This document shows, piece after piece, positions 24,490 through 51,690 of a DNA stretch of 64,000 nucleotides. Made by a program: the position numbers and the translations under genes. Origin of the DNA: Lepidodermella squamata (lineage: Eukaryota; Animalia; Gastrotricha). The stretch is taken from NCBI GenBank assembly GCA_047495785.1, contig JBLDXI010000019.1:3534001-3598000 (forward strand), in the 5' to 3' direction. The number at the start of each line of letters is the position of its first letter. The first letter of the stretch is position 1. The notes beneath the pieces are model-generated. The model was not told the DNA's origin. It saw nothing but the letters and a program-made list of their open reading frames with translations, and searched no databases.

Positions 24490-25090
24490 AGAAGCAGGCG
24501 GACAAATTGCTAGTTATCGCTGCGCTCATCCTCACAAGTATCCTAGGACCAGCCAGGCGTGGACGAGCATTCGAGACCATGTAAATTCACCGCAAGTTTT
24601 TCACTCATCCTTTTCGAAGCACTTCGCAGAGGTAGGCGAAGTTCAAGTGCCAGCAGAGATTAAAAGCGAAAGCAGCCGGGCGTAAGAGCGCCTAAAAAAC
24701 TGAAATAATAGTTTATATACAATGACGAAAGCAGTGCCGCGAAGTTTCAACTTACGATGCATAGAGATGAGGCTGAGAAGCAACAAATTTCCACGGGCCC
24801 GCAATTAATCACCAATCAATGCTTCGATTGAAAACGAACGAGACAGCTTTCGAGTTGCGCCTTGGTGAAGTCAACAGGCATCATATCGCCGATAACGATA
24901 ACGGCACGAAGCGTATATTTTGCATTTGTCAATAGTGACGGGCAACAAAGGCCGAAGAATCGATTGGTTCGCGGCTGTTAGTGTAAAGACGCAATTTGAC
25001 CCGTAGTTGCGTCGACGTCGCCAACACGGAGACACCAGCTGATGATAGTGGTGATTTTCCAACATCTGGCGGACTTGACCGCGCGTACCT
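24490..25090 (-). pseudogene. Degenerate fragment of a paralogous CMC transposase (3' exons)
   Basis: GTRGQVRQMLENHHYHQL...KCKIYASCRYRYRRYD matches exon 4 of the intact transposase. 24490-24780 is paralogous to 27355-27650. Confidence 0.75.
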
Positions 25091-25660
25091 AAAATTATAA
25101 ATAATAAATAAAAATTAACGCCAACCATGAATTATGCAATTTAGAATTCATAAACATAAACGAAATTCAACTGGCTATGGCTAAATATTATCGGGTGATG
25201 AACGCACTTTCCTAGCGTTGATAAACAGTAGAAATACTGATATCAGCGCAAATGTTTCCATTGAATTCAACGGCTTCGCTGATGTAATTGAAAAAAATCT
25301 TCATTAATTTGTCAACATATTCTGGCCCTTGAATGTTTGTACGTAAGAGTTTTTACTCGAGATATCATTCGACTGGATTTTTAATGCATTTCGCCCTTGT
25401 TTCGGCATTGAAACCAGATGGCAATTACTATTCGACCTGTCCGATTATTGACCACTTGACGTCTCCCGAAATTTAGAAGATTCATCGCCCTTCGATTAAC
25501 GGAGACTACGAGGTTGTCAAATATTTGCTATTTACGGAAATGCTTTGTTAACATTAAACGGCAACGCTGATGTGACTGAGGGCTTTGTGACTCCATGCGA
25601 CTCCATGACTGTGTGATTTGCCATGGATCACTCGATTTTTAACCTTGGTCCCAATTTCCG

Positions 25661-26135
25661 ATGGGGGCCGATTCGCGGCGCGTGCTACTCTACGCTTGTG
25701 CTGACGGCCACGCCGACCTCGCCTCTTACCTAGTCAAAAAAGGCGCCGACATCGGGGCCAAAACGCGGAACGAGTGCCGGAGCAGCGTTTACGAAAATGA
25801 CACCTTGCCAATACACCTGGCATGCAGCGACGGCTCTTTGCAGATCGTACAACTATTACGCGGCATGGATGAAAGATTTTCCCTAATAATCGATACAGTG
25901 TATCAGCAACTATTACATAACACAGTGAGAAATTCCACAGGCGAATATGGATTTACTCGGCTTCATAAGGCTGCAGATGCGGGTAGCCCCAGCATTGTCC
26001 GTTACTTGGTCGAACAGATGAACGTGGATATTGATTGCAAAGACATGGCAGATGCCACGCCTCCTACACCGGGCTGCCATATCTCACGAGTTGCAAACAG
26101 TCCGAACATTGGTCAGATTGGGGGCCAAGACTAGA
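25661..26135 (+). pseudogene. Ankyrin-repeat gene fragment inside element B
   Basis: LLYACADGHADLASYLVKKGADI, LPIHLACSDGSLQIVQLL, GFTRLHKAADAGSPSIVRYLV. A frameshift near 26060 continues as LHRAAISHELQTVRTLVRLGA. Confidence 0.85.
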
Positions 26136-26609
26136 AGCGCTGGTCACGGGTCTCGAATAGTCGACGCCTGTTTAATCCCAGGCATCCCATTAGCGCAATT
26201 GACGTTCGTTTCAACGTACATTACAGTCGTTTTACCTAATTTATCCTTTGTCCCGCTCTCTCCATCTCTCCCGCTAATATTTTGCAATTCATTACTGTAT
26301 ACCTTTTCCAATAAGGAGACGATGTGGTAAAACTGACTCTAGCTCATGACTGTCTATATTTTTAGCATCTTAATTATAATTCGCTGCCTCTAAGCAACAA
26401 TCGCGGCGAAAATAGAAATAAAACAAAGATTGACATTGCCCATGGGCCTCCCGATGACATTTATGTGGGAAATTTGAACCATAACTGAACAAAAATTTGG
26501 CCCAAAGTCGTAAAAAAATTTGCGACGAAAAAAATAAAGGTAAAGAGCTGCGACCTACCTTGAAATATCGAAGTGAGTAGTCATGCTTCCATGTACGCTG
26601 AATTCCAGT

Positions 26610-27660
26610 CGTCGCTCGTCGTCGTCGTCGCCAACTATGCGCGGAGTCATCAGCTGATGATAGTGGTGATTTTCCAACATCTGCCCGATTTGACCACGCG
26701 TACCTAAAAAGATTAATAAAAAATAATTCAGACTAACACGAATTTTAGAATTTAGCATTAAGAGACGAAATTTAACCGGCCATCACTGAACATTATCGGG
26801 TTCCCTAACGCACTTTCTTAGCGTAGATTAACGCACGAATTATTACTCAACCCTCGCATTCTTTGAATCGCATTTGCTTGTCTTCAACGGTTTATCTTGA
26901 ATATTAATTCTCAAGGGTGAATAGAAATAGCAACTACTCTAATGCTCATTCCCTGCTAATTTGAATTCAAAGAATAGAGATAAATTTTATACACGAAATA
27001 AAATTAAATTGGAAGTTATGCTGATAACTTGACGAGTAATTCCGAAAGCAATTCGTTGAAATAACTAGTTCAGACGTCTACCTTTGGCAATTTTTTAAAA
27101 AGACGGAAGACAATTTTCCTACCTTTGAATTGTACTTTTAGTCGGGCAAGGAATCCTTCGTAGCCATAAGCCGAATTATTACCAATACTCCCGAAATGCT
27201 GAGCACACGTTGGAAGGTGCACGGCTTGATGCAGGTTGAACATGAGGATTTGATCGCCACACAGTAGTTGATGCGTCTCGTTGACGTAGCCATTCAGCAG
27301 CGTCTCGCTTGCGATAGTTGATTCAATAAATCACGGTTTTGCCAGCCGATATTCAAACTGAGAAGCAGGCGGACAAATGATGCTGCGCGACCTGGGCCCA
27401 TCCTCACTGGCGGAATGCCTAGAACCAAATAGGCGTCGACGAACATTGGAGACCATGTATATTCCCCTCAAGTTCTTCACTCATCCTTTCGAAGCAGTTT
27501 CAGCAGTGGGCGAAGCTGAACTGCCAGCAGAGATTCAAAGCGAAAGCAATTGAAGACCGCCTAAAAAAGGCGTAAGAGCGCCTAAAAAAACTTCAAATAC
27601 CAATGATTGTACCGCGAAGTTTCAACTTACGATAATAGAGATCAGGCGCATCACCATGGT
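26610..27660 (-). pseudogene. Second degenerate paralogous CMC transposase fragment (exon 3/exon 4 equivalents)
   Basis: Minus strand 27270-27123 reads QLLCGDQILMFNLHQAVHLPTCAQHFGSIGNNSAYGYEGFLARLKVQFK, followed by the same intron position and GTRGQIGQMLENHHYHQL at ~26703. Confidence 0.8.
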
Positions 27661-31090: not shown

Positions 31091-31466
31091 AGATTGACCC
31101 AGTTCGGGTCTTTATCGGAACATTGAAGGAGTTTCAGTTACCATGAATTCCGCGGCGCGTCGTTTCGTCCGTAGGGATACGCGGGGTCGACGATTTTCGA
31201 TGGAGTTGCAGGACGTGATCTAGGAAATAGCCAGCCTGCATAAAAATACAAGGTAAAGACGGGAATTATTCTGTTACACAACAAGCTTACAGGGAAAATA
31301 CCGCTGTCGTTGGCCACAGCGGCTACGAGAGCTCCCGGTTGCGGGTTCCTATTAGGAAAAGTATTGATTTTTTCCCTCAACACTTTCAGGACATCAACGT
31401 TGCGATGATCGACGAGCGATTTAACAACCTGTTTAAAAGCTAATATTTGCAAAAGCTATGACATAG

Positions 31467-34400
31467 TGTAACCGGTGTGAAGTCAACCGTGACGAACTGC
31501 CGCTCAGTTCGCCGAGGTTCTACGCATCACCGGCAACATAGCGCGGTTCCACTCGACTTACATCTCTACGGTTCACCGACGTGTTAGCGCGATTCCTGTA
31601 GCCGACACAGTAGCTGATGTTGCGCATGACCGATCTTCATCATCCGGAACCAACACGGCCTCGAAAAACAACCCATTCTGATAGTATATAAACCCTGTTA
31701 ATAATGTTGTCAGACACTTGATACACACAAGTCAGGTAGTTGTTTATAGTATAATAAAACCTGTCAGTTGTTGGAGTCCGCCGTCTCTTGCCTAGACCAT
31801 TCGAACCCCTGTTACATTTGGTGTCAGAAGTGGGATCTAGCCAAGAACGGCGGACCCCATGATCAAGCAGGAACCTGGCGACCCGGAGGAGTGTAGGACT
31901 GCAGATAAAACCTTAGCGAAAGCTGGACGACCAATGGCCAGGACGTTCGACACCCGGAAGATGTAGCCACAACGAACGTCAAGGTGCCGACGACATAGAC
32001 AATCTGCAAGGCAACGAGAATCGGCGGATCCTGGCAAGTATCGACATATTGATCGGACTGGATCAGACGGAATGATCGGGTGGATCGGACTGGGCGAAAC
32101 TGGCAAGACAGCCTGGCAAGGATAGGATCGACGACCGGTTAGTCTAGGCCTGATCGTTTGCGGACAACGTTGCTAAGGAAACGGATGGAATGGTGCAGGG
32201 CCTACAATGTAAAACTGTGTACTGTAGCGTTGACTGCCCACACTTAGTGATTAGTACGCGTAGTGCGTAGTATTGCGAGTTATGGAAATACTGGCTAACC
32301 CTAGCACTGGTAATACCGGGTGCATGCAGCTGCTTTGGAGGAAAGACATGATGGTTTCAGACCGATAACCGACTTCAGCCCTAACCCCAGCCCTAAGACG
32401 GTACGGACAAGTGGATGAGTTTCCTTACACGGACGTAACTTCTGGTTGTCACCGATAATATTGAACGGAGACGAGGGCGTGTTTGTCCAGCAGCAGTTGT
32501 CGTATATATGGTTGTGGAACGAAGTTTGTTATGGAGTATGCCCTTCTTGAAAGGAAGAAGGAAGAGACTGTCGCAATATAGTGAAGCTAACGACCGGACG
32601 GTACCGTAGACACGCGCCGCATTTACGTCGGGAATCAAAAGTTCGGCCGAACCTTCTTCACCTGGAGCCTGACGTACAGAATGCGAGCGAATGACTGACA
32701 ATTGAGAGCGATGTGATACTATGATTGTACAATCCTGGAGACGCATAGTCTGGAGATGTCCCAGGTGACGACCTGGAAGGGAGCGGTAGTTCGCAAGGAT
32801 TTTTGACTGGGTGATATGGTAAGAAAACCCCCGAAAGGCGGCTCGCTCCGAGTTGGCTGCTGGATGATGGATGGCGCCACTTGTGATGTTGTTTGAACAC
32901 CCCTCGAAGTCGCCAATTGCAGTCTTCTTGGACTGGTTTAACCGCGTTGATCATGACGCCGCTGAACCTTGCTGGGCGATTGTAGCCGTGAAAGATGCTG
33001 CGACGAAGCGTGAATGGCATCGGAGTATCTCTAAAGTCGCAACGTCGATTGAGGAAGTGACGAACCCTGTAACCAGAAGCCGAGGTGATGATGATAATGG
33101 AAAGGGCGGGTGGCGAGTTAAGAGCCGTCGACTTAGTAAACCTTCTCTATGACACATATTTCTGGAGAGAACTACACGATCGAGTCTGACGCCATGTGTT
33201 CGAGGAATAGCCCTGGTGTGTCGAACTGGCCGAGTAGCGAGTGCACTTTCTCGTCATTGGTGATAGTTGCTCTTCTGATTCAGTCTTGTGTTGTGCGTTA
33301 TAAACCTTCTAAGCTTGTGTCTGCACCTATCTTTTATTAACTTGGAAAAAAGAGGGATGGGAATATCATGTCGGGACGGAGTGGAGTAGCCATTAACAAC
33401 CACCGTAGCAAATTAACAAGTCGATTAATAACAATTGTGCCAAGCCGTAGTATAGTTTATGTGCGCCGACACGGATTATGGACTATTACTAACATTATGA
33501 CCTTTGTTGCTGGTAGTATAGTTGCATAGTAATAGTGTTGTATATAGTAGTGTTGTTTAGAGCTATACTGTTACGATTCCTGTAAATCAAACAGATACGC
33601 CTGCTCTAATATGTGATGAATTGAAGCAACTCACGACCAAGATGCAACTCAAATCTTCCGTCGGGTACTACGCCGCATGTGAACCACAGCTGCACAACGT
33701 TTCCGGCCACGCCGTAGATTCGACGATGACGACTCATCGGCAACCACCGTTACAGTGGCAGTTGCAGCATCTTTTACTACGGGGCGGACATTGACTTCAA
33801 CCTCGGCGTCGACCAGTGTAGCAGCCTCGACGGTTTCCGCGGCCATTGCGCGGGCACCTACGTCAGGAACTGTTTCGGACACCGACTGCGGCATGCGGGT
33901 AGTTTGAGGATTCATTGATCCCGGTGGATCACTCCTCAACCACCGTAAATACGACGCGGTAATCGCAAGATCGCGGGCATGTCCGCTATGACGGAACAGA
34001 AATGACTCATAGGTGCGAAGAGCTGCTGCCACTAGCTCCTCGACGCCAGCACCGGTCGTTAGGTCGTAAGTTCGGCCAGAGATGTCACTGGATGCTGGGC
34101 TGATGGCACCCGAGCGTTGATCTTCGACGTTGGACATACTGGGCGTAGTTGTATTGCTTGAAGTTATGGAACTGCCTCCGACATGGTCATTTTATATGGT
34201 AGTCAGCGAACGATACGCGGTCACGATTCAATGACTCTGTGGATAACTGTTTTCATGGACACCCGTAGTCATAGGTTAAACGGGGAGGAATTGTAACCGG
34301 TGTGAAGTCAACCGTGACGAACTGCCGCTCAGTTCGCCGAGGTTCTACGCATCACCGGCAACATAGCGCGGTTCCACTCGACTTACATCTCTACGGTTCA

Positions 34401-34641
34401 CCGACGTGTTAGCGCGATTCCTGTAGCCGACACAGTAGCTGATGTTGCGCATGACCGATCTTCATCATCCGGAACCAACACGGCCTCGAAAAACAACCCA
34501 TTCTGATAGTATATAAACCCTGTTAATAATGTTGTCAGACACTTGATACACACAAGTCAGGTAGTTGTTTATAGTATAATAAAACCTGTCAGTTGTTGGA
34601 GTCCGCCGTCTCTTGCCTAGACCATTCGAACCCCTGTTACA
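31467..34641 (+). mobile_element. Non-autonomous LTR retrotransposon (gypsy-like signals), 3175 bp
   Basis: 350-bp LTRs TG...CA at 31467-31816 and 34292-34641, identical by eye, each with TATATAAA and AATAAA. 4-bp TSD ATAG. PBS TGGTGTCAGAAGTGGGAT (31819-31836, tRNA-Leu type). PPT GGGGAGGAA before the 3' LTR. No recognisable gag/pol. Confidence 0.95.
33649..34137 (-). CDS. Antisense ORF (162 aa) of unknown function inside the LTR element
   Basis: ATG start, TATA-like sequence ~55 bp upstream on the minus strand, basic C-terminus RRGRKR...RRSTRRKI. Longest ORF in the element. Confidence 0.45.
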   Translation of the reverse strand: MSNVEDQRSGAISPASSDISGRTYDLTTGAGVEELVAAALRTYESFLFRHSGHARDLAITASYLRWLRSDPPGSMNPQTTRMPQSVSETVPDVGARAMAAETVEAATLVDAEVEVNVRPVVKDAATATVTVVADESSSSNLRRGRKRCAAVVHMRRSTRRKI

Positions 34642-35288
34642 ATAGCATTGAAGAAAACTCACATAAGACTTGTTAATGCCCGGGTAGGGGTCGACAGGCT
34701 GAGCGGGTGCGGCCTTCTTCATCTCCTTCAACGTTTTCGATATTTTTCGTAGGCGCATTTCACTGGAATGTTGCAAGCAATAAAGCTTGCAGATTTGCTT
34801 CTGAAATTCAAATACCATGTTAAAAGCCATATCACAGCATTGCTACCGCATTGTGAGTGACACATCTCACGTGAAAGATAATTTTGAGCACACCTGAGAT
34901 TTTCCTTTCCTTTCCTTTCGTTACCTTTCCTTATTCCGAACCTTTGCAAAGAATGGTAAAAACATAGTTATCTCAGTTTTTGATTTGAAAAAAATTTAGA
35001 AATACCTCGACCATTTCATTTTAAAAATCGAGTTCCCGAATAATGACACAATAATTTCATCAGAGTTCTTCATCATACTGTATCACGAGACCAGTTAAAA
35101 CGCGTTCTTTCCCTAGGAACTGCAAACAATCATCTATTCAAAACAAAGTTATAACTTGCCTCTGGCGATAGCCGCATGAAATCCCGCTTCTCCTCTTCCG
35201 TGATCTCCGTTGACGATGGCTTCTCTTTTTTAGGCATCTAAATAAATTATATGAAGAAATTTAGTAATCCTAGTGTAATCTTCAAATT

Positions 35289-38200
35289 TCAATACAAGTC
35301 TACGCTCAAATTCCACGGAACCGCGTCAAATGACTGATCGCATGGTTTTGTAACCGGTATTAAAATTAATCGCCTGCGTAACTGCGACATAGGGATTAAA
35401 CAAAAGCTATTTTTCAAGACGCTATCAATAAAAGAAAAATCTAAAATTCTATAACTTGTTAAAATACGCTTAGATAGTTCGTGTTCTATAGCCGGCCTTA
35501 AATCGTCAATGGCAGCGTTGATATCAGCCGGAAACCGCTCACGCGGGGCCGTGGAGATCGCATTGAGACGGCGCAGGACAACGCCCGGTGAGTTGCGATC
35601 ATACTTGATGAGGCGACATAAGGCTAGTAGATCTTTCGAATTGCTGGCGGGCTCCCCTGCTATTTCGCCGGGAAATTCGATAAAGCAGAGAAGTTCCACA
35701 GGAATCAAGTCATCACGAATCAGCGCTTCAATCGCAAAAGACCGCGGCAACCTCCGGCGAGCCCCGTGGTGTAACCAGCTCCCATCAAAACGCTGGTGGC
35801 GATAGCGGCATGTAGTGAAGATCTTGCACTTAGCTGGTGTTACTTGAAGCAATGCACGCAAAATGGCGAGGTAATCTTCGGAAAGGCGAATGATGCGGTT
35901 TGAACCCGTTGTCTCCTTGTCATCTCCAGCCAGGCGAGGAGTAGTTAGCTGGTGATAATGATGGTTCTCTACCATCTGCCCGATTTGACCTCGGGTACCT
36001 AAATTATAAAATAGTACATGTAATTTCAAATTTGTAAAGTTAATCAGCGTTATTTCACTGATGAATGACATCAACCTAGAATTCCTAGGTTTCGGTGCCG
36101 ATGGCTTTTTTGTTGAAGAATTTGTTCACTTAACACCTCTAACCCTAAGCCTCATTGCAGACGCCTACCGCAATTCGCTGTCAGCCGAGCGGTCGCATAC
36201 CTCAACGACGTCTATGCCTGTTGTTATTCGGAAATTAGATTGGAAATATCGAAAAAATGGAGTTAGTATCGTCGAATGGCTTACATTTGAAATTCGCTGA
36301 AGGACTAACGAGATTGCTTAGTAAATTGCTACTATACGAGTCGTTATTTAATCGGCTGATTCCCGCTAATCTTGTTATTTGGATCGACCCCGAGTCTGCT
36401 CCCATTTTCCGAGTCCGGGCTACCGAGATCACTGACTCAGACCGTGGACGTGAATCTGCGATCGGGCGTACCTTGCGGTTTCCTAGGGTTCGCGACCTTC
36501 GTGATCCGTCTGAGAAGGGTCATGAGAACTGCACGACCCTAACTAAACTTTTGCCTATGAAAGTCGGGCCGATGCGGCGCTTCCTGGAAGGCAACCCATC
36601 AGCAGCAAGACTGCTGGTCGAGGTCGCGAAAAGCAACTCGCAGTCGGTGCTGTCGATCCAGTGGAACGTCAGCGTTTGGACGAACTTGCCGCCGCTGCCG
36701 CCCAGACACGGTTGAAAGGCAAGGAAGTCGTTGTTTTTGATGCGCTGCAATCTCACATGGCCCAGATTCGTGAACACCTTGCGCATTTTGGTGCCAATCC
36801 GGTCAACGCTCCTAAACGCGGACTCACCAACCTTATAGTCGCAACGTTGCTAACACGACCAAGGAGTATAAGGAAGCTTTTCATCGAAAGTCTCATCGCA
36901 TACAATTGAGTCCGTCAATGTTAAAGTTTACATGAAGGAGCCACATTATCACTGCTTTCATTTTCTCGGGCGAGTTGTTTGATCTATGCTGTCGCAAAGA
37001 TTTAATACTGGATTTAATAATACTAGCTTATTTGTTGTCCTATGGCGATTCGGCTAATAAACCCCGGTAACAATCCAGGCTGTAACGAAATTCCGACAAC
37101 ATTCAACTGGCTAATGTTAAACATATTCGGAGTTCTCACTCATTTTTCACATGACAATAATGACTACCGCCGAAATCGAAGAACAGTCCCATTCAATAAT
37201 GAGAACAACTCTGTATAACCCTAGAATCTGCGCTATCGAGTCGTGGTAAATAAGACTTTTCGAAATTTCATTTCAAAAATTGAATTCGAAAACCTAAGCG
37301 CATATCAAATACGATTTCTTGTATTCTTGAATTATCGATCGCTGTCATTGGCCACTACGGCCACGCCACAGCCCAATTGAGGGTTTCGATTGGAACAATT
37401 GTTCATCTTGTCTCTCATCAGTTTAACTACGTCGACATTCCTATAGTCAACCAATGACTTCACAATCTGTTAAAAGCTAATATTTGCAAAAACCTGACAT
37501 AGAGGTACCAACCTCTACGTTAGACATGTTTTACTTTCGCCCTCTGATCGGCATCTACTATCTTTCTTTCTTCCTCAAAAAAATTGACTTCACCAATAAA
37601 CACGAGACGAATGCTAGTCAGCGGCAGATAAAGCTCATGGAATCTCTTGCAAAATAAATTCGCACATTCCTCCTGGGTCAATGAAATGCTAGTTAAGTTG
37701 ACACAATCTTTCCTTACGGATGCTGGTATTAAACTGGCTATGACTCGAAACAACGTATTTTCCCAAATATTTGCGCAATTTACGATGCTGTGGTATTCCG
37801 ATGAGGAAAATCGTCAAAGATTGTCGAGAGCCATTTTTAAATTTGAGACCCTTGCTATTTCCTTATTTGTTACATGCTCATTCACCTCCTAGCCCTAGTC
37901 CGACTCATTTTAGCCATCAGGATTTCTCAGGCAATAATAACGATATTTTGACAACATTCATGAATAATTTGGAGGGGAAATGACATGTGACATATATTGT
38001 GATTGATCGACACACAAAGGCGACTACGAGAACAAAATTTTGTCGCATTTCGAACTGAGACATTTAATCAATTTCAAATCTATCAAAAGTAATACTAAGC
38101 AGCAATTTTATATGTACTTACCTTTAAACTCATGTTTAAGGTGCGAAAGGAAGCCTTCGTAGCCATAAGCGGATACATTGCTGACGTTACCAAAGAGCTC

Positions 38201-41200
38201 AGCAAAATCAGCAAGATGTAGCGCTTGATGGAGGTTGAACAGCAATGCCTCGTCGCCACCCATCAGCTGATGTGTCATAATGGCGTATCGATTGAGCAAA
38301 GAACGGCCTGTACGGATGGCAAAATTCTTCTCTTCAACATTTTGCTCATCGAACTCGAGCAGCAAACGTAACGCCAATTGGAAGGTGACGAACAACAGGT
38401 AGTAAGCGTTCGGTAATTCGTTAGCAAATACTGTCGATCCAACGAAACACAAGTAAAGCTTCATGTGTTTTGCACGCCACTTTGCGTGCACAGACGAATC
38501 AAAGGCTGTGAGGCGAACCGTGATGAGTTGACTAGGAAGGTGCATGTTGCGAAGCTTGTAGGCAATAACTCGACGCGAAATTGCAGACAGTATGTCATCG
38601 CTGAACAGGAACGCTGAGTTTATTCGACGACCATTGCCTTCCTCGAAGCAGTGAAGAGGCTCAACAGGCGCGTCGCGAGGAAACACCATATCGGGATAAA
38701 ACACCGATACTCCGAAAACTCCTTTTAAAATACAAACAGAATGTTAAATATATATATATATATAGATAATGTTCAGATGAAGTCAAATCCTCCTTAAAAA
38801 ATTTCAAAATTAACCCAAGTACCGCAGGAAAGACGACAAGTACATATATATTTCTCAGCTACATAAATAACCCGCCTTGAAGAATAAATGATAAACAAAT
38901 TGATAAATAAATCGTAGAATTAATACAAGGTTTCTGAAATGATAACTATACTAATAGCATTGAAACACCCTCCAATGACTGAGATGAAATTAGAGAAATT
39001 TTGCCGCTTTGCAAAGGTATAATATAGAAAAGTTGGTTAAACCACCCTCTCGAAACACAAACAATAGCTCACTCACCCGTGAAATAATCAAACAAAGCGA
39101 TTAAAGTCGATCTTATTCTACATATTATATTGCTATTAGCAAAGCAAAAATCCCCACACTGAAATAGTTTTCTAGACTATAAGAATTTATAACATAATCA
39201 AATGAGTTAATTGCACACACCCCGAATAGGACTACCCAGCTAAATAGCTAAGATAACGCTAACAGACAAAAACAAAATATATCTACAAGATATTCAAGAA
39301 ACAAGGTGGCGTAGCAGTAAGAAATGATTCAACACTAAGCAAACACAAATAGTTCAACAGTGCCAATTAATAAAACCTACATTAGATTTAACATTAAATG
39401 ATTATTATCATTACCATTTAAAACGTCGAGATGCAGTCTTTCAACAATCGCTCCCACTTCATCCAGCCCATTTGGTCCTCGCAGGTACTGTTCTAGATTG
39501 GGCACCAGTCGATAACGCCAACCGACACCTTCGATGGTCACCCCGGTGACAAGGCAATACGGGCAGCCGTGTTCGCCATTGAATTGCCTCATATTCAAAC
39601 ATGGAGCTCGAGCTATCAAGTCAGCTATGAACGAATGCAAACAAATAGCCAAATTGATTCGAACACCACGTTGAAATACCAGCACCTTCGGAGCCCGAAA
39701 TTCACGTGAAGTTTTGTTCAGGCACAGATCGATAATCTTTTTATAAGGCGGATGGCAGGGACCTTGCCACAAGCCCATAATGATAATGTTATGCGGCTTG
39801 TAACGAGCATGAATCGGCAGGTTGACGATCGACGCCGTTAACGGCCACACATCGGTGCAGCCTGTGTTCCGCTTAGACAAGGGGGTGCCGTCGAAACTGA
39901 CTTGCAATTGCAGACTATGACCAAGATCGCCCATGTTTTGAAGAGTGATGCCATTGTTTATAACATACTCGTTCATGACAGTCAGCAATTGCCAAGCTAG
40001 TGACGGTACAATCACTTCAGCGCGAGCTGATGGCGCCAATTTCTTGTTGCAATTCGGGCACTTGCTGTCTCGATCCAGCTGGCAGAAACAAACCGGACAC
40101 ATGAAGCTTCGGAAACACGGTTTCACCAGACTACCAGATTTCTCCAACCGTCTTCGATAAACGTAGTGCGACTTTGGAATGTACTGGCGTAGCTCTTCTT
40201 TGCAATAGACTCTGACAAAATCGAGTACTTCATCGACAGCAGCTCGAGACAATTTGTGCTGCATTTCGAGGCGCTTCAGACGACCCATAGCATCATGAGG
40301 ATCGGTTGTCCCATAATTCGGCTGGCGAACAAATTCAGCGTACGAATAGCTTTCGCGGATAGGAAACACATTCGATGCTCCTGCTGCAGGCTCATCATTT
40401 TCTTGTCCTTGTTCTCCGACGTCATCGCCATCAACACCACCACCATCATCATCATTGTCACCATCGCCATCGCCATCGCTTTCCTCGGAGGACCAATCAG
40501 ATATATCATCAGTCTACAATAACAAATATAATTTAATAGACTGCAATTTGCAAACAAGTACTAATCAAGATATGTAAGTAATTAGAGGACAAATTGCTAC
40601 GCAATCTAAAATGATATTGCGCACATGCTTTCTAGCCATGTGGCGACGCCGTCTTAGCTAAGACGCAACGCAAACAGCCTAAGTTAATGCGCAGCAACAA
40701 ACCGACAAAAAAATACCATTCTAACTATAATTAACATTGGCAATAACAACGATCATTATGACGAAATCGCCGCGAACTGGTGATTGCTCAAGTACAAAGA
40801 ATTAAAGTAAATCAACGTCCCATTATAAAAGCAAACAAAAAAAATACAACGTCATACAACGTTATAACTAACAAAGTAATAAACTAAATTATTACCCATG
40901 TTTTATAATACCAGCTTAAAACTAGAAACTAGATACCTGACTCGAAGATTTGTATAACAAGGTAACAAAAAAGGTAACAAAAAAAACGACACAGAAAACT
41001 GAAATTTATCAAATAATGCTTACGCTTTCACTCGATTCGCTGGGTGTCGATTCGGTGTCGCTGCTTATCGTAGAAAGACTACCCGAATCAGTTGCAGATG
41101 GATTGATATTACCAAAGGAGGATTCTTCCGTTGACTCTTGCAGCCCCGATTGAGCATCAGTATCATCATCATCATCATCCATAGCGTCAGATGATAGGCC

Positions 41201-41731
41201 ATCACCGCCGCCTTCAATCGATCGTTGCTGTTCAGCTTGAACTTCCTCATTTTCATCATCATCATCATAATAATCCATAGCTCTGTCAAGTGAATCACTT
41301 CCTACAGCGTTAACAACAGTTGCATCACCGCTTGAATCTTCGCTTGCATTAGTCTCACCGACAATAGTTACTTCGCTCATGCTCGAATCAGCATCATCAT
41401 CATCATTATCATCACCGTCCTCATCGTCATCGCCATCAGAACTGTCGCCACCGCCAGTTGTTGTTGTTGTTGTTGAGCTTGTTGTAGCAGAACGCGACAT
41501 TGAACTCGGAGAACTCGAAGAAGTAGCACTAGTAGCACCAGTTGAAGGCTCATTCGAGCTAACTGATGTCAGGTCTGACACGCTGTCTGACGCATCACTG
41601 CCCGCTGTCGGTAACACAGTCTGAGAAGTTTCTTGTAGTAGCGGAACATTATCAGGACGCTTTGGACGACGTCGATCTTCTCTTCCTATAGACTTGCCAT
41701 CAGTCCGCAATCTGTCTGCGCGCTGAGACAT
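35289..41731 (-). CDS. CMC/EnSpm(Mirage)-type transposase, 4 exons, ~1038 aa, apparently intact
   Basis: Exons 41731-41024, 40513-39415, 38721-38122, 35998-35289 (3117 nt, phases 0/1/1). Motifs CPVC...CPNC, SFDGTPLSK, VWPL...NLP...R...NIIIMGLWQG, ADLIARA...QFNGEHGCPYC, GVFGVS, EPLH, FNLHQALHL...SAYGYEG. Acidic S/D-rich N-terminus. Confidence 0.9.
36061..36960 (+). pseudogene. DNA ligase IV-like OB-fold plus BRCT-like segment, antisense inside transposase intron 3
   Basis: VIWIDPESAPIFRVRATEITDSD...GRTLRFPRVRDLRDPSEKGHENCTTL matches the ATP-dependent ligase OB/motif VI pattern. After a 1-nt frameshift at ~36550, LKGKEVVVFD...IREHLAHFGANPVNAPKRGLTNLIVA resembles Lig4 BRCT1. No adenylation (KxDG) domain. 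Confidence 0.75.
37310..37760 (-). pseudogene. BEN-like gene fragment in transposase intron 3, duplicate of the 31300-31466 segment
   Basis: CANLFCKRFHELYL...IGEVNFFEEERKIVDADQRAKVKH, then after an intron IVKSLVDYRNVDVVKLMRDKMNN. The exon and adjacent intron (AAAAGCTAATATTTGCAAAA) are shared with 31430-31466. Confidence 0.55.
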
Positions 41732-42430
41732 GAGGTAGCTCAGATAAAAAATACACAATGTGTAATAACACACTAGATTCAGAAACAAAAACAAATGCAA
41801 CTATATTATGCATAGCAAAGTGTAAAGATACTTAGAAAGCGAGAGAGACAAGAGCGCAGATTTTCATCGTCTCGACATTCCAATTATTTACAAATTATTA
41901 CCAATTACTTACTTATTTGAAACTATATATAGAACGTACTTCAGTGATTCTTTTTCATAGGACCCTTCTTCGGCCTGATAACTACTTTCACTTTATCAGG
42001 CTTCGGCTCAGGATGGCGCAGAGAAACATGACCTTGCATCGCTGTTCTCACGGCGAATACCATGCCACACTTCTCACACGAAAAGTGGCCCGGGTGCTCT
42101 AACAGATGGTCTTGCAGCTCGATATTGCACTGAAATGTCTTCAGGCAAACGGTACAGGCGAAAACTTCTGCTAGCATATCGTTCGTGTCGCGGAAGAACC
42201 AGCACTTTGCTTATTTTTTTTGTTCAGCAGTACCGAAATGTACAGTCCATGGCTCTGTAAAACAGCAGTACTGCTCAAACCGACTGTAAAATAAAGTACA
42301 GTCGGCGCGCTGTACTCGCTGTACAGCTGAAATTAGCTGTACACCCCGGTACGGCACGCCTGACCGTACTGCTTAGTACTGTAGTGATCGGGCAGTACTC
42401 ATGCATACGGCTCAAATACTGTACTAATAG

Positions 42431-42540
42431 TACAGGAGAGATACTGTACTTCAAGTACAGGAGAGATACTGTACTTCAAGTACAGGAGAGATACTGTACT
42501 TCAAGTACAGGAGAGATACTGTACTTCAAGTACAGGAGAG
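42431..42540 (+). repeat. 25-bp tandem repeat x ~4.4 in the Sola subterminal region
   Basis: Unit TACAGGAGAGATACTGTACTTCAAG, no spacers. Confidence 0.95.
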
Positions 42541-43044
42541 AAGATAGTGTACATGCGAAATACAGAAGACGATGTCGCACTTCAAGTACGGTATATGGTC
42601 TGTGCCGTATTCTTTGGTAAAGTTTATTTATCTTGATCGGGATAGCAGTTTTCAGCTTCAGATCCCTTCAGTTCAGCTTCAGATCCCTGCAGTTGCAGAT
42701 GCGAAGACCTTAGACTTATAGCTTAGCGGATGCCACCAATTATTTTCGATCCAAATGTTTACTCAAATTTAAATTCCCATTTTTCGCGATATTTCGTCAG
42801 CAAGTGAACGCAAAGTATAGTGGTTATTCGGCGGTTTTATCTATTACGTAATTTGATTGACTGATTAGTGATTAGGTTCGACTAATTCACCTCGTGAAAT
42901 CTCGTCTCCGCTCGCCTACCGGCTCGCTCCGCCTCGATTTCACTCGTTTCATTCGCTTTACTCGATCTATATTTCGTGCTTCACTCAAATATAGATTCCT
43001 ACTCATGTTATATCATACAAATATAGAAATTAGGTATCTTTTAT

Positions 43045-45256
43045 TCAATCATCAAAATCTGAATCATAAGGCACTGAATTTTTTCTAACATTGAAGCTCT
43101 CAAATATTGCACGCTTGTCGGATTGTTTGCCATTCCACGGCTGATAAGGAAGATCAAGAATCTTCTCGGTATATGACCTCGGTATAATTTCGTTCTTCAG
43201 CATCTCAAGCATGTCAGCCATCAAAGGGTAAGGGAGTGGAAGAGGGGACTTTCTCAGTTTCGGGGGAATTCCTACTGGTACTTTTTTGAGCGAATTTTTC
43301 GATAGACTGTACATCTTCCAAGGCCATTTCGCTTCGTAGCCGTCTCGAACAAAGACAGCTTTCGTCCCCTTTCGATATCTGAACCAAACGCCTTCCGACC
43401 ATGGTAAATAATCGCTTTTTGTGCTAGGCTTGGTTCCAATCCCGAAAAGGTCACAGTTGAGGTTGTTGCTCATTCTCCAGTTTTTTGGCTTCCGAAGCTT
43501 TGATGTGAAGCTTGGCTCGCCGTGGAAATCCAGGAGCTCATCCCAAGACAAATCGTGAATGAAAAATGGTTGTTCAGGGCGACAAATTCGGGCGACTTCT
43601 CGCCAGTCTGTAGGGAAATTGATGGAATGCCGGCTGCCTCTTCGCTCAATCAATCTGACAAAATTGAAAAGTTGAAAAACGGCCAATTTTCTATTCATAA
43701 ATTACGAATGACAATGGTCAACGACCATCATTGTATGATTAGCTTGGAAAAATTTGTGATGGACCGATTGGAGCTGTGACGTTGTGTTTTCCAATGCGAA
43801 CATGATGGCGTTTGCGAAGTAGCTGCTGTGGTTCCCTGTGCCGTTGTCACTATATATGATCAGCGTACGGCAGTTCGGATGGTGAACCGGTAAATACTTG
43901 GTTATATAGGCATATAACGCAGATCCAGCGGAGCTACCGTCAGGGTGTTCAAGGTCAATGTCATCGGACATGAAGCAAAACGCATTCTTAGACACCATTT
44001 CATAAATCACTGCAACAGATATAATATATATTTAAAATATATATAAACATCGCAAAAATACCGCAATTCCAAGTTTTCATTTTCCTGTAGTGATAGTTTG
44101 CATCGGAAATAGCCGGGCTTAACAATGCTTTTTCATAGTCTAGCTGTATCACGACAACCTCCGATTTCTCTTGGGCCATTTTCGTATCGGCCTTGCAAGC
44201 TCGCCTAGCAGCGTTCTTCATGTATAAATGCACCTGGAAGATAGATTTGCGCCTCTCGTCAACTCTGTTTTCGCGTAGCCGCAATCTAAATTTTCTGCAT
44301 TTGCAACACTTGTCTTTCTTGGTTAATTTCAAAGACAGTTCGGGGTAGGCTTCGCGTAAAACCCGTTTGAAGGAAGAGAAGCCAAGTGGGTATAGGCCCG
44401 CTGAGAGAGTTGAAAAGTGCCTCAAATATGCATCGAACATTTCTCGCTGCGTTATGTCTCCTTGGATATAAACTTTTCTGGAATTTTTTCGGACATAATG
44501 ACCGGGTGCACGCTCATAGCTATCAATGAATCTGTAATAATTTGCAAATAAATGTTTTCATAAATCGACCGGAAGGAATTACCTGCAGCAGTGATCAAAC
44601 TGTTCGTTTGAGATTGCGTTAGGATTGGGCTGACAACCTCGTTCATCCGGCTTGGCGAAACCTAGATCGCCAATTTTATTCTTTAAAGTCCACTCGACGA
44701 AGTTGCGCGGGGAAAGGCCAAGGGCGCTGTGGAAAAACTTCGAACACACGCGAATGTTGCCGGCCGAAGCCTTGTTCGAAAACGCGCCATCGAATTGAAA
44801 AGTGTGGTGTTTCGAAGGACCACGTCGAGGTATTACTTGGCGAATTATGAAGCTGCGCCGGTCATCTAAATTGCTGTTTTGAAAAGCGTCATATAGCCGG
44901 CGGACATTTTGCTGAGGAAAATAGTCTTTACAACGATTTGGGCACTTGCAATGATAAAATAAAAATGGCCGAAGCGGTGGAAACAGGACGTTTCGATCTG
45001 GCTCACCGGGTTTCAAGTTTCTAGCTATATCGGAGGAAGAGTCTAGGGTCGCGTCACTTTCTTCAGTTTTCGGCCAAATGAATGAAGGCAAATAGTCAGC
45101 ATTCGAAATTTCTGAAATATTCGACATTTGAGAAGGCGTTGACGTTGCGGAAACAACTGAGAGGTTGTCCAGCATTCTGCTCAATACATTGCCAACAGCA
45201 GAGCCCAAGCACGACGAGCAAGTCGCGCTAACATCAGAATGAGAATTGCTCGACAT
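43045..45256 (-). CDS. Sola1-type DDD transposase, 4 exons, ~685 aa, apparently intact
   Basis: Exons 45256-44583, 44531-44062, 44009-43706, 43654-43045 join in frame. Motifs CKCPNRC, VCSKFF..LG, GHYVR, KKDKCCKC, LDYEK...YHYRKM..WN, YSDN, KFF..NHT...DHCHSLIER, PTDW. The true start may lie further upstream. Confidence 0.88.
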
Positions 45257-45333
45257 TATTAAGGTAGACAAAATAAAGTCCTAAAGATAAACAATAATCA
45301 AGTTCAATATGCATCATTTTTAGTTCTCATCGG

Positions 45334-45705
45334 CTAATTTTTCATACTAGATCGCCTCTTGGGTGCCTCATTTTGTTTGACAAAATAATTTTTTTTTGAC
45401 CAATAAATCAATTCTTCAATTTCCTTCTCAGTAAGAGCTAAGCTGCCTGTTTTTTTGCAATACAATTGTAAATGTTTTTTCAAACCGGATGAATCGAAAA
45501 ATGTTTTATCGCACAAGCGGCACTTTCGGCGAAAACCGATTCGATGAGGTTTTTTCCCAACAAATTTACCCATAACTCGTCGTTGGCCTTTGACTCTCAA
45601 GCTTCTAGATGTTTTTTTCTTAGATTTTTCCAACTCAAGCCATTCGCTTCGCGTTAGGCGCAACTCAGACTCAGCAGTAGTTTCATCAAGTTCCATGGCG
45701 GCCAT
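45334..45705 (-). CDS. Basic zinc-finger (CxxC...HxxxxC) ORF inside the Sola element, possibly the last exon of the accessory gene
   Basis: CRLCDKTFFDSSGLKKHLQLYC. In frame with the upstream acceptor except for one TAA near 45715. Confidence 0.55.
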   Translation of the reverse strand: MAAMELDETTAESELRLTRSEWLELEKSKKKTSRSLRVKGQRRVMGKFVGKKPHRIGFRRKCRLCDKTFFDSSGLKKHLQLYCKKTGSLALTEKEIEELIYWSKKNYFVKQNEAPKRRSSMKN

Positions 45706-45834
45706 CTCGATATTTTAAAACCTCTAAGAAATTGGTTATATAAAAGAAGATTTAAAGTAATTTCCACCTCATTCCATTTTAAAACCTCACAAAAACTCGC
45801 AACCACGCCTTCAGCAAGACTAGGACTGCCTTAC

Positions 45835-46748
45835 CCTGTATTGGTTCATTTTGCTCATCACATTAGTGACGGTACGTCCCCCAAAGGACTCTTCGAAGCA
45901 AGTACCCATCTCCTTGAGTATTTGGTGGAAGTGCTCAGTTGTTGACCTGACGTAGCCTGGCTCCCCAAGGTCCCGGCGCTCATCCATTGTCCTAGCAATC
46001 GCCTTTAGGAGCGGGACTTCCTTGACTTTGTCGTAAAGTGACCCAGTCCGATCAACAACTGTCTGCGGTGCCGCTCTGGAGCCACTGGTACCGGTGACAA
46101 TGGGTAGGTGAGACTGTGACGCACCTAAACTCAGAGGTGGCGCATTGAAAGGCGTCTGGGCCGGCGACGGCTTAGGTTCGGTTTGTAATTCTTATGCAAA
46201 ATTAGAGACATTTAATTAAAGAAATATGCATAAACAATCTGAACCCTAGCGCTGCGAAAAACTGGGATAAATTTGCGATTTTTCCAGCAATTCAGCTTAC
46301 ATTTAACCTAAACTAGGAAGATCTGTCCTGAAAACTTTCTCCTTTTGAGCATAAAATTTGAAAATCAGAGGAACTTCCACCTAGGATATATTCGATAAAA
46401 ATATTCACAAATACCTGAAATCATTCTCGTCAAGTCCTCGACCTTTTGCGACAAAGATGGCTGTAGCGTCATTAGGTCCTCGAGATAGCGTCCAAAAAAG
46501 ACTGATATATGAAGGCGCTCTGGATTCAAGTGAAACGCTAGCAGGAGGTCATCATCGTCATCAATGATGACGAAATGATCACCATCATGCCAAAAAAGGC
46601 CATAGTCGTCAGCTTTAAAGATGTTGCGGAAGACGGGGTAGATTTTCGTTTTTAAAAATACTAAAGGGTTCTCCGCGGAACTATTCATTCTAACGCAACG
46701 TGCCCACTTTGACTCGCCGATAGTCACTTTTACTATTGAGTCAGTCAT
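45835..46748 (-). CDS. Sola accessory gene: PB1-like domain plus Myb/SANT-like segment
   Basis: Exons 46748-46415 and 46190-45835 join in frame. YGLFWHDGDHFVIIDDDDDLLLAF is an OPCA-like PB1 motif. LYDKVKEVPLLKAI...FHQILKEM...RTVTNVMSKMNQYR resembles a trihelix/Myb-SANT domain. Confidence 0.65.
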
Positions 46749-49700
46749 TTCAGAAAATTTACCTAAAATCACGAAAAATGTGAACAATCGTTTGCAATGG
46801 TAATATCGGCAACGGGCTGTGAAGAAAAAATAGGATATATCGTCACCATGAAGGAAATATGAAGTGTGATTATATTCCTTATTTTGACACGAGTTGCTCT
46901 TTCTGCTAAAAATGCGCTTTATTACCATCAAAAACGATGACTTATTTATCGAATATTAGACGTGACAAGTGACTTCGGTCCTACTTTTTATTCACAGGAG
47001 TTTGAAAAGGAAACAACTTACTTATAATCGTTATTGCTCAACGCCCAATTTTCATTTGTCTGAGAAGGTGGAGTAGAGGTTGAAATCATTTGTCAAGTTT
47101 CTTATGTGAGCAACGAAACATGGAAGTCGCGTCTATCGTCGCGTCTATCGTCGCGTCGCAATCGTCGCGTCGAATAATTAATTACCTGCACATTCGTCCG
47201 ATTCTCACTCTTTCACCAAAATCGTCAATCTAATTGTGAGTGGGTTTGCGGGCCGTAACTTCCATCGACTACGTTATAAAAATGAATCTCCCGTACTCTC
47301 GTGTACGGTTTAGACGAACCGTACACAGTCATTACGGCTGTCACTCCTGTACTCAGCATGTACGTTGCATTCGACTGTACTTGGGCGTACAGCTCAATGA
47401 GCTGTACGCCATGATACAGGAATGAAACGCTGTACATCTAATATACAGCCTGGTCAACTGTACTCAATCTACAGTCGAATGAGCTGTACTGACATTTACG
47501 GCCATCAAAACTGTACCAGTTTGTACAGAATAAATATACTGTACTCTTGTGTACACGAGTTTTTTTGCCTAAAGTGCTGGTTCTTCCGCGCCACGAACGA
47601 TATCGTCGTTAACATTGTTTTCAGCCGCTAAACCTTTTTTTCTCTTAGAAGTTTTCATATCGAAATTAACGATACTGTCATCTTGAGATTGGCTTTGCGA
47701 TGCCTCAAAATAGTTGTGGTCATCGCCAACCGATGATTCCACCTGCTTTTCAGATTGCTTTTGACATTGCAAACCAATCAAAGAACTTGCTCCGCCTTGC
47801 TTTCGCAATTACATGCACAATGACGCAATACAACCATATAAGATTTACTTACGCTTTCCATTACTATTTCGATTTGCCATAACAACCTTTTACCAGACAG
47901 CTGCCACTGTATCAGTAGGTAAAATGAAGCGGTAACGAAGCAACGATGCGAGCTAAAATCACCGCGGGGGATGACACAAAACACACGCGCACCACGTCAC
48001 GTGCCCCACCTGCGTCCTTAATAAATAAGTGTCAACTAAAGAATTCACTATTTTTAAAACCAAAACATAACTAAAACGCATTTCAATCAACTTTAATCCC
48101 TATTAGGCACCTCTAAATATTGTTAGCTGCATGTTTCGCCTAGAGAAATCAAGCAATTTTCGCACATCTCCCAGAACCCAAGATCTTGCAAAGGCATACA
48201 TCTTTACCGAACACTGCAAAACTCCTTCAAGACACCTGGCTAAACAGATTCAACGCGCCGAACTTACAACGACTTGACACAGATCCGTCGAGGCGCCTTG
48301 CTCACCATTTTTAACAAGGCGCCTGCAAAGACACTTGCTCAACATAGTCATTTTTCAGCTTTTTTGACCAATGATCCGCAAAGTCACCCTAGGTGACCCC
48401 GCGGCCTCCTGCTCCAGCAAAAAAACAAAGATCTTGCGTGATCACAAGAGGTCGTTCCAAAGACTTTCCTCATTTTTATTCTAGGGTACGGTATCTAAGG
48501 TTGCCATAGTAGGCAAGATGTAAAGTACGGATGATAATTTGTTTAATAACTCGGTAACCATGAGAAATTTCTTGGAGCGGGTATTTCTCCAGTCGATAGA
48601 TCTAGTATGTTGTAAACTTTCCTAAAATCCTCGTCAGATTGGGATAACATTCAGGATTACTCCACTTTTATCCAGTGTTTTACCGATTTCCTAACAGACC
48701 GATTATTTAGAGAAGAAATCAGCTGAGCTGTTAAACAGATTTCATTCCAACTTTGTTCTATTTGTTTCAATGAGGCGCCGGTTCAAGATTTGCTTTGCAC
48801 AAGAGGATCGCCACAGCCAAGTTTATCCTACCAATCTCCGCCGCAGCTCAACTACTGGGACACTTATTCAAACATCTTCGATAATGATATTTATTCGAAT
48901 GACCTCGCCTTGTCCGAATCATCTCGCAAAAATAGCAGCGTTACACTTATGCATCCTTATGGCAAAGTATGCATGTGGAGCAAAACTGTGAGTAATTTGC
49001 TACATTCCGTAACTTTGAGTTATCGAACGATTTGTTCAATAGAATTTCAACCTGGGCGATTTTTATGCCGAAATAGTGCTGACGCAATGGTACGGAGGCG
49101 TCTTAATTGTCGTTACCAACACCCCAGCTGTTGTAAGGCCAGATTCGAAGGGTAAATACAAATTGACCCCAGCAAATTTGTATGCATTTGAAACTTCCTC
49201 GAGTGCAGGTAATTATTGTGGAACTTTTTCCAACCCAAGAGACGCTGAATCTTTCGATTTAGGTCTTTATATTTACATACCATTTTCTGCCAAGCCGAAT
49301 GCTGCTACAGTCAACTTCAAAAGTCTCTCAAACGCAAATTGCTCGATAAGCGAATACATCAACTTCGAACCAGAATATTGCTTGTTTAACTGCAAGCTGT
49401 CTGATGCCTGTTTTAAACCGACACAGCTGTTCATAGAAACGTTTATGCGGAAGCCATTCACGCTAAAAATTCGAGTTCAAGGAAAGATGGTAACAGTCGA
49501 TATTTGTCGCGCCAGCTCGTCGTTTTGCTCTCGCATGTTTGAGACGTCCATTAACCAAAAAATTGATTTTTCCACTATGAACGCGACATTGGGTATAATC
49601 CCAGTTTTTTCTGAAGTCGAAATATCGTCAATCAGCGTAATGGACTGTGTTATTCCTTACACCGGAGCAGCGTCTATCGAGGCCTTGGCAACCATGACAG

Positions 49701-51690
49701 CTGATAAATTACCTGAAAGCGATAAAGGCCTGACAGCTTTCCTATCCCCAACTACAGGCCTGTCAACAACCGCTTGGCCATCGTGTTCTTCAACATGTGG
49801 AATCGGCCTGAAATGGCGATTGTCAAATGGCTCGAATGCGGAAAGCCAACAGTGCACAAACCCGATTCGATGCTCGGCTTCAACGGAAGAACAATCGCGG
49901 GGGGTCGACATGATTTTTTCGCCGGTTCCGACTTTGGACAGCTATTTCAAGGCTCGAAAAACGATCAAGGTCAACCTGGCTAAGAAAATCAGTGATTTAT
50001 GTGCGAAAAACTTCACGAAATGTTGCCCAGCTTACAATGCCGGGTCTCAAACTCCGAGTTTCAGCTATGCGGGTTCTGACGATTTGATAGACTCAAACTA
50101 CGCCAATACTTCGCTGACGGCAAGTGGCTGCTGTTTCAGAGTGACAATTCTTATCAGCAAAACTAATCCGACTAAGTTTTGCGAGGCTGGCGGAAAGCTG
50201 AAATCAGCCAGTCGGAAGAAGCGAGCGTCTTCCGATTCAACGTTGATAAGCCAGGCGGATCTCAGCTCGATAAACTCAGATCCTGATTTCACCAAGGCGT
50301 TGTCATATGAGTTGGGCTACTCAATCAACATGAAGAGTTGTCTACCAACCGAGGCGAGATGTTCTGGTGAAGATTCCCCGCCGGCTGTGTCTGTTTCTCA
50401 AGGTTCGAGTAGCAGCAGCTCTGATACAACGGGATTGAGCCAAACTACGATCATCATCATTGGATCGGTTGTTGGAGGGGTTGCTTTCGTTGGAATTTCG
50501 GTCGGGCTGATCGCTTATTTTTGTTGCGTTAAAAAGAAGGCAACAAGTCCAAACAAAGTATCACCACCTGCCAGTTATACCGGTGGTCGTCGAATGTCGA
50601 ATGCTGTCGGAGCGACTGACTGGTACTCTAACCCCAGCGCGAACGTTTACGCGCCCCAATCTTCTCCATCAGCCCTACCGATGCAATTCGCTGGGGAGAT
50701 GCCGATTCACTCGCAGAAGCCTTACAGCAATAATTACTAAACGATTTGTTCAAGCTGGGAGCAACTAAATTGAATCTCATAGTGACTGGCTCAGTGCCTT
50801 ACTTGACTGAAGCTTTTATGATCCGATTGCGGTTTGTTTTGTTTTCTCTATCGAAAGAGCGTCTTTTAAAAGCGGGTTGCAGGGTCTGATCTTGGATCCT
50901 ACAGCTGCCAGAGGTGAAAACATTTAGTATTTGCCAAAATGACTCGTGATTTCAATCGAAATTTTGATGATTTTCTACAAAAGCACGCTTCAAAAAAACC
51001 TCTAAAACCATTTTCGTTTTCCTGTCCTGATTAACCGAGCCCGGGGGAATGGAGGACGCCCCCCTTTTCCCTCAAACTCATAGAGAGCAAAATATTTACA
51101 AAACAAACTCATAGAGAGCAAAATATTAACAAAATCTTGAGAAATCAATAGCGTTAGCTAGGAAATAAGCGGGTGTTCTCTCTGATCACTTCGTTCTCTA
51201 TGCGAACTATGAAACTTGCTTATTCATCGATCAACTTTCTTGTTTAGGTTTCAGTAAAGCCTCTTCATGGCCAAAAATTCTGAGCTGTCAGAAGAGTTCA
51301 CAAATAAAAAATGAATATTAAGGGCTTTTTGGGATGAATGTCGATTTGAACATCTGACTACCTCTGAATGAAAAATAACGAAAGAATGACACCTGGAGCT
51401 TGTGAAGTATTTGCCCAGAATATATATCGACTCTGTGGGATCTTCTCGGCCCCAGTTTTCGCCCCACGATATCAACTTGCCGAGTCGTCAAGGCCGCTTG
51501 ATTGAAATTGCTGTCTTTTCGTGAATCAAATATCAATGAGTTACCGGAATTAGCGCACTTGGCTTTGCGCACACAGCAAAATGATGATGATTGCGCACAT
51601 AGCAAGTTGCGCACAACAATTCTCGAAGTGAGAGAATTCAGAGTTCAATATGCACAGCCAGGAAAAATCGGAAAATCGAAATATTATATA

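Follow-up and report, generated by a model that had tools for sequence, protein, structure and literature searches.

A stretch of plus-strand sequence resembling DNA ligase IV (Lig4) lies inside an intron of a transposase gene that is read from the minus strand, and the question that it raises is whether a transposable element here carries a ligase-like gene of its own or a piece taken up from a cellular gene. The first-pass annotation of this DNA had described an 'OB-fold plus BRCT module' and had read it as a catalytically dead Lig4 mimic. We examined this reading in the window, i.e. the whole 64-kb stretch of DNA that was analysed, and in further contigs of the same genome.

The transposase gene and its intron

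The transposase gene that holds the Lig4 piece, and the element around it, comprise the following features, in which paralog B denotes a second, diverged transposase copy in the same window.

38122-38704 (−): transposase exon 5' of the intron, 59% amino acid identity to B 27112-27303
35999-38121 (−): CMC/CACTA transposase intron of 2123 nt, identified by its splice sites, with the whole Lig4 piece inside it in antisense orientation
35289-35998 (−): transposase exon 3' of the intron, C-terminal region, 55-69% amino acid identity to B 24808-25119 and 26618-26725
39377-40369 (−): probable Transposase_21/DUF1258-type (CACTA/CMC) catalytic region, from Pfam and Atlas features
23024-48486 (no strand assigned): candidate outer bounds of a giant composite element of ~25 kb, provisional, with CCCTAG termini and TA at both flanks

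The intron has the donor AAAG/GTAAGT and the acceptor TTTAG/GTACCCGAGG on the minus strand. The ORF of the catalytic region matched Pfam DUF1258 with an E-value of 4e-5, which is under the cut-off, and its Atlas feature scores against clusters of Transposase_21/DUF1258 were 0.94-0.95, with 175 features in common and Rotifera as the commonest taxon; for the transposase ORF we found no database homologue and no PDB sequence match. The candidate termini of the composite element read CCCTAG(T)AATA.AAAT at 23024 (+) and 48486 (−). Its interior is nested, containing an LTR element, a Sola-like element and the second transposase copy, so that the bounds are provisional and the ends may belong to another copy. 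A candidate internal terminus near the Lig4 piece, CCCTAGAAT at 37219, resembles the outer terminus; it has no matching partner or duplication and was rejected.

Paralog B has the identical junction (donor 27122, acceptor 26704, intron of 419 nt), and its exons show 59-69% protein identity there. The antisense nesting in a transposase intron described by the first-pass annotation is thus borne out by the splice sites and by the junction of this paralog. The Lig4 piece itself is absent from paralog B, which carries a different insert.

25661-26134 (+): antisense ankyrin-repeat ORF in paralog B, Pfam Ank E=1e-15

This ankyrin ORF sits between duplicated exon starts that border the intron (B1, 26600-26745; B2, 24796-25140), and the intron holding the Lig4 piece shows no similarity to it. 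The presence in paralog B of another foreign coding fragment, antisense at nearly the same place, fits repeated capture and not a conserved gene of the element.

The Lig4 piece also stands out in base composition, with an exon-like GC island of 51-61% at 36350-36880 compared with 29-42% GC in the surrounding intron. A smaller GC island lies at 36100-36250, and the dip at 36250-36350 coincides with a candidate 79-nt mini-intron. The edges of the main island correspond to the points at which homology with paralogous contigs ends, 36377 and 36833-36841.

The ligase IV homology and its extent

Within the intron, the Lig4-like sequence and its surroundings can be divided as follows.

36061-36261 (+): ATG-initiated ORF in the small GC island, with 36113-36197 partly common to one paralogous contig
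36262-36340 (+): candidate 79-nt mini-intron (GTTAGT...CTAAC...AG), read from the sequence, AT-rich with 36-38% GC
36377-36553 (+): Lig4 OB-domain tail, 59 codons corresponding to the final 59 residues of the domain, ligase motif VI included
36554-36708 (+): linker-equivalent stretch with the frame change, both frames being open over 36547-36712
36709-36849 (+): BRCT1-like block, covering approximately the first 45 residues of BRCT1

The Lig4-like pieces (the OB-tail frame, the BRCT-like frame and the upstream ORF) were queried separately. The peptide WIDPESAPIFRVRATEITDSD...TLRFPRVRDLRD...ENCTTL reads in frame at 36380-36544 (+), with the motif VI sequence LRFPR at 36473-36487 (+) inside the OB tail, in agreement with the coordinates of the first-pass annotation, and it is carried by a plus-strand open frame of 158 codons (36239-36712). 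Searched against the PDB with phmmer, the OB tail returned four rows that are Lig4 chains, with E-values of 0.0025-0.0041 and human residues ~548-601 aligned, the remaining row being an unrelated protein with E=1. The profile comparison with Pfam DNA_ligase_A_C gave an E-value of 0.001 and 19.9 bits, under the gathering cut-off of 27.5 bits. For a Lig4-specific profile, P0002 and ten relatives (P0002-P0012) were aligned as alignment A1, and the resulting HMM was run against all 2071 stop-to-stop pieces from the six frames of the 64-kb window. The single match was 36377-36553, with an E-value of 4.4e-13 and 45 bits, spanning residues 47-105 of the 36239-36712 piece and HMM positions 273-326. 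The OB tail was also aligned with A1 by hhalign with 97% probability. The Lig4 likeness noted at first pass was therefore confirmed by the Lig4 HMM, by hhalign and by the Lig4 chains of the PDB.

In an exhaustive phmmer search of 1.84 billion representative proteins, P0002 alone was a true match (library-wide E=1.4e-4). It is a 380-residue metagenomic C-terminal fragment of Lig4, with OB and BRCT regions of Lig4 type, and its BLASTP alignment with the OB tail has an E-value of 2e-13 and 42% identity over 64 residues. The locus from which P0002 derives is a 3.9-kb marine metagenome scaffold. The second match of the search, P0001, proved to be a repetitive bacterial protein and was discarded as spurious. 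Neither size-matched proteins nor metagenome contigs yielded a relative of the Lig4-like ORF, and an exact look-up of six ORFs from the window returned no record. As all PDB matches with E<0.005 are Lig4 chains and the best library match is of Lig4 type, the OB tail is nearer to Lig4 than to Lig1 or Lig3.

By hand count, the OB tail keeps 14 of the 15 residues that are invariant over this stretch in the A1 Lig4 set, which argues that the piece was copied from a real Lig4 and has decayed little. Its identity to the A1 Lig4 proteins is 38-51%, and those proteins share 47-85% identity among themselves. Given this identity range and the retained invariant residues, the piece could be close to the Lig4 of the same genome, and these values do not establish the earlier view, in which far divergence spoke against a fresh capture.

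The second block lies in another frame, open at 36547-36909 (+), which encodes LKGKEVVV...HFGANPVNAP...TNLIVA. By hhalign it was aligned to the start of BRCT1 in A1 over 46 columns with 30% identity and an E-value of 0.076, and 54 of 5000 shuffled sequences matched its score against an HMM of the linker and BRCT1. It lies ~48-60 residues downstream of the OB tail, which is the length of the Lig4 linker, and the two are colinear. Neither Pfam BRCT (PF00533 or PF16589, E up to 10) nor Pfam Ank matched the block, its top PDB rows were ankyrin repeats with E=0.14, and the AF2 single-sequence model of the BRCT-like ORF was all-helical and of low confidence (pLDDT 62). The block is probably the first half of Lig4 BRCT1, an assignment that we accept for its colinearity only. 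The BRCT claim of the first-pass annotation is in this way weakly confirmed, by the colinear hhalign match and not by Pfam or the PDB, and the Lig4 order of OB domain followed by BRCT1 is supported. The block ends at TNLIVA (~36849), and homology with the paralogous contigs likewise ends there, at 36833-36841.

As the OB tail and the BRCT1-like block occupy different frames, a frameshift between them is required. That much agrees with the single frameshift proposed at first pass, which had been placed at a T-run at ~36550, but the homology, judged by eye, suggests a site nearer 36590-36610. We also considered an intron in the linker that would restore the frame. The only GT-AG pairs available differ from the true introns of this region in being GC-rich and having poor donors, and for that reason a frameshift mutation is the simpler and more likely explanation. 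Read-derived contigs from the same genome match the window sequence at 36515-36634. No indel in the linker is listed for the paralogous contigs, and the frame break therefore seems to be common to the paralogous copies.

Upstream, the ORF at 36061-36261 can be joined in frame to 36341 across the candidate 79-nt GT-AG segment, so that the splice proposed earlier for this exon is possible. Compared with the Lig4 alignment and the PDB, the upstream ORF showed no detectable homology to Lig4.

The rest of Lig4 was sought in all six frames of the 64-kb window. Queries with the Lig4 HMM and with single Lig4 fragments, among them P0010 and P0003 for the DNA-binding domain and for the adenylation domain with its motif I lysine, P0009 for the second BRCT and P0012 for the XRCC4-binding linker (PF11411), matched nothing more than the OB tail. 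Not found in any frame, therefore, were these two N-terminal domains, the initial ~60% of the OB domain (~150 residues in full), the second half of BRCT1, the linker and BRCT2. The absence of the adenylation domain had already been reported at first pass. Binding of Lig4 to XRCC4 runs through the linker between the BRCT domains and through BRCT2. The supposed module thus amounts to 59 of ~150 OB residues and approximately half of BRCT1, in two frames. It is unlikely to be a functional mimic of Lig4, since both domains are incomplete and the surfaces for interaction are missing. With both domains truncated, the frame broken and the catalytic and XRCC4-binding parts missing, we infer that no working Lig4-like protein is made from this copy.

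Copies of the fragment elsewhere in the genome

We searched for other copies among Logan contigs from one sequencing run, the single run in which the region is found and probably the one behind the assembly, placed on the window at 80% likeness. The Lig4 piece was present on at least two further contigs, at ~88-95% identity, and the extra contigs cover 36252-36841; variants were seen on two contigs in the OB tail and on two in the BRCT-like block. The cargo is therefore present in more than one copy, and uniqueness to this locus, which would have counted against the earlier reading, is not what was found. On the evidence of these contigs, the Lig4 piece is shared by several copies of the element, which form a small family, and is not confined to this locus. 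On a contig of 4.7 kb, the BRCT-like block is accompanied by transposase sequence 82% alike to that of the window, at a distance of 1682 letters compared with 2712 in the window. On another, the BRCT-like block is followed by a stretch like 36113-36197 and then by sequence that, over 255 letters or more, does not resemble the window.

The differences between copies bear on whether the cargo has been maintained. On one contig, the cargo differs from the window at 8 of 134 positions and the transposase exon at 104 of 579 when mismatches only are counted (Fisher p=0.0003), or with p=0.10 when gaps are included. This lower divergence on one contig means that the cargo may be better conserved than would be expected for junk. 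Of the substitutions listed for paralogs, three of five are synonymous when read by hand, and one paralog has a net in-frame deletion of 9 nt. In addition, two paralog snippets of ten codons each are free of stops, one immediately ahead of 36259, in a place where the window copy is interrupted by a stop, and the other after 36197, and the unlike sequence of the paralogous contigs extends over 255 letters or more on either side. Judged from these open snippets and the unlike flanks, the window copy may be shorter and less intact than others.

Origin of the fragment and comparison with known elements

We favour, with a probability of about 0.7, the explanation that the Lig4 sequence is a transduplicated fragment of the host gene, carried as cargo in a Pack-CACTA-like manner and non-functional as a protein. 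The fragment of a cellular gene lies inside an element, with transposase exons on both sides of it and within the candidate CCCTAG termini. The segment at ~36260/36377-36849 would represent a Lig4 coding fragment from the late OB domain to the middle of BRCT1, presumably of host origin, that a DNA transposon of CACTA/CMC type acquired by copying and that lies today antisense in the transposase intron. It would move and multiply with the element as passive cargo (transduplication; cf. Pack-CACTA and Pack-MULE), and its capture may have come about by template switching or gap repair at the element, or by uptake of DNA lying between neighbouring elements.

Several of the observations could also be accommodated by a transposon-adapted accessory gene, in which intact copies would express, from a spliced plus-strand ORF joining the upstream exon to the Lig4-derived C-terminal part, a small protein that acts on end-joining factors by interference or recruitment; the copy in the window would be a degraded one. 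The piece is present in several copies and is perhaps better conserved than the transposase exon, most of the few listed substitutions are synonymous (three of five), one paralog has lost a net 9 nt in frame, and paralog snippets are free of stops, one of them at the place of a stop in the window; a start codon (ATG), a plausible intron of 79 nt and an open frame of 158 codons are available as well. However, both domains are truncated and the XRCC4-binding linker and BRCT2 are absent, the frameshift is accompanied by no indel difference in the paralogous contigs, paralog B does without the piece altogether, and the 1.84 billion representative proteins hold no homologous ORF except one ordinary Lig4 fragment, with none that is size-matched or metagenomic. 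We consider such a gene unlikely. Slightly less probable again is the more specific proposal that a Lig4-derived ORF, made up of the upstream exon and the OB-tail/BRCT1 sequence, is under selection in an animal CMC subfamily and either encodes a small protein opposing end joining where the element excises or yields, from the intron, an RNA antisense to host Lig4, with a window copy that is slightly degraded. Cargo of Pack type has been discussed in plants as a source of small RNAs against the parent genes, and transposase pre-mRNA complementary to host Lig4 mRNA might here feed small-RNA pathways that dampen Lig4 or that target the element. The piece is indeed antisense inside a transcribed unit, and, being little decayed, it may still resemble the host gene, but antisense is the common, tolerated orientation of intronic inserts and needs no function to explain it; an antisense-RNA role is speculative, and we regard it as very unlikely.

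A dense nest of elements surrounds the single Lig4 piece of the window, as might be expected had transposons inserted around the remnant of a host Lig4 locus or pseudogene. Against such a remnant, which we think highly improbable, the piece lies wholly in the intron of one transposase gene whose junction is conserved in the paralog, it recurs on other contigs, once alongside transposase sequence, and further Lig4 exons were not found within the 64 kb. The least probable of these readings is that the resemblance is due to chance or to a mis-assigned domain, e.g. that the second block is an ankyrin repeat, as its best PDB rows (E=0.14) and the failure of Pfam BRCT to match it might suggest; the OB tail is far beyond chance, and the second block falls on the start of BRCT1 at colinear spacing with no match to Pfam Ank.

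Scraps of host genes in plant CACTA, MULE and Helitron elements are well known, and animal CMC elements carrying host-gene fragments are much less documented than these plant cases. If the cargo explanation holds, neither 'Lig4 gene' nor 'Lig4 pseudogene locus' is a suitable annotation for the piece. Were there intact copies under selection, the transposon would bear a decoy of the very ligase by which excision breaks are sealed, and its interaction with the host would be of a new kind; the present evidence does not support this.

Transduplicated cargo, the explanation that we prefer, can be set beside three known systems. Set against human LIG4 (PDB 6BKF, 3W1B and 7LSY), the 59 residues of the OB tail, motif VI among them, are colinear with residues 548-601, and the block like the start of BRCT1 comes after them at the spacing usual for Lig4. 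Unlike the human protein, the piece lacks the DNA-binding domain, the adenylation domain, the initial ~60% of the OB domain, the second half of BRCT1, the XRCC4 linker and BRCT2, and its frame is broken. Large multi-ORF En/Spm (CACTA) elements and giant cargo-carrying transposons of eukaryotes have been reviewed (PMC6431247), and the very large CMC-type element described here (~25 kb, provisional) resembles the enlarged En/Spm elements in carrying extra coding material, although the extra material that we examined is a gene fragment and not an intact accessory ORF. Capture of gene fragments by CACTA elements has been described (Catoni et al. 2019, PMC6379663), and the likeness to Pack-CACTA and other Pack-TYPE elements is seen in a carrier that is probably of the CACTA/CMC superfamily, in the incomplete cargo from a cellular gene, in its presence in several copies and in the different fragments borne by different copies, here Lig4 and, in paralog B, ankyrin. 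Pack-TYPE elements are by definition non-autonomous and have been described in plants, whereas here transposase exons flank the piece and the host is an animal, and the cargo, unlike that of Pack-TYPE elements, is antisense in a transposase intron. With transposase exons on both sides of the piece, the carrier works like a Pack element and is not one by definition; it is most likely an animal counterpart of Pack-CACTA capture in which the carrier is autonomous.

An LTR-type element beside the transposase gene

The following element lies beside the CMC/CACTA transposase gene:

31467-34641, LTR-type element with two direct repeats of 350 bp each (31467-31816 and 34292-34641)

The two repeats are perfectly identical to each other in sequence and have TG...CA ends, the element is flanked on both sides by a 4-bp duplication (ATAG), and only approx. 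2.5 kb of interior separates the repeats. From these sequence features, it looks like a young, recently inserted non-autonomous LTR retrotransposon. We also observed that the segment adjoining its 5' LTR (31302-31466) shares 72% identity over a 165-bp stretch with positions 37340-37502 of the transposase intron. The same intron contains, at 37219, the motif CCCTAGAAT, which is identical to the nine bases with which the outer terminus at 48486 begins (one of the CCCTAG ends that are candidate bounds of the giant composite element), and a small palindrome, AACCTAGAATTCCTAGGTT, at 36073-36091 (within 36070-36094). A partner or target duplication matching either the terminus-like motif at 37219 or the 36070-36094 palindrome was looked for and none was found.

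Paralog B and ORFs upstream of the catalytic exons

The window carries a second copy of the CMC transposase gene (paralog B), and two ORFs, encoded on the same strand as the transposase catalytic exons, are located upstream of these exons:

24796-27303, 3' exons of paralog B, diverged and rearranged
41009-41800 (-), long Asp/Ser-rich acidic ORF
41941-42177 (-), short C2H2-zinc-finger-like ORF

In paralog B, approx. 120 bp comprising the intron end and exon start is duplicated, and the copies, at 26600-26745 and 24796-25140, bracket a 1.5-kb insert within which lies an antisense ankyrin-repeat ORF (25661-26134). The two upstream ORFs may represent N-terminal exons of the transposase.

Other repeats and the flanking ORF family

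Further features were identified as follows:

42176-47603, 5.4-kb nested element bounded by a pair of 33-nt terminal inverted repeats (97% complementary)
1233-2753, 7505-9067, 49076-50740 and 59174-60820 (+), four long members of a paralogous ORF family

Just within the left end of the nested element, a 25-nt tandem repeat is present in five copies (42416-42566). A very high-copy repeat was found at 34894-35087, with a summed contig depth in run X1, whose contigs cover the region, of approx. 22000 compared with approx. 40 for single-copy neighbours. The four paralogous ORFs, which display weak matches to the thrombospondin type-1 repeat together with a Mid2-like transmembrane stretch, are found to either side of the transposon nest.
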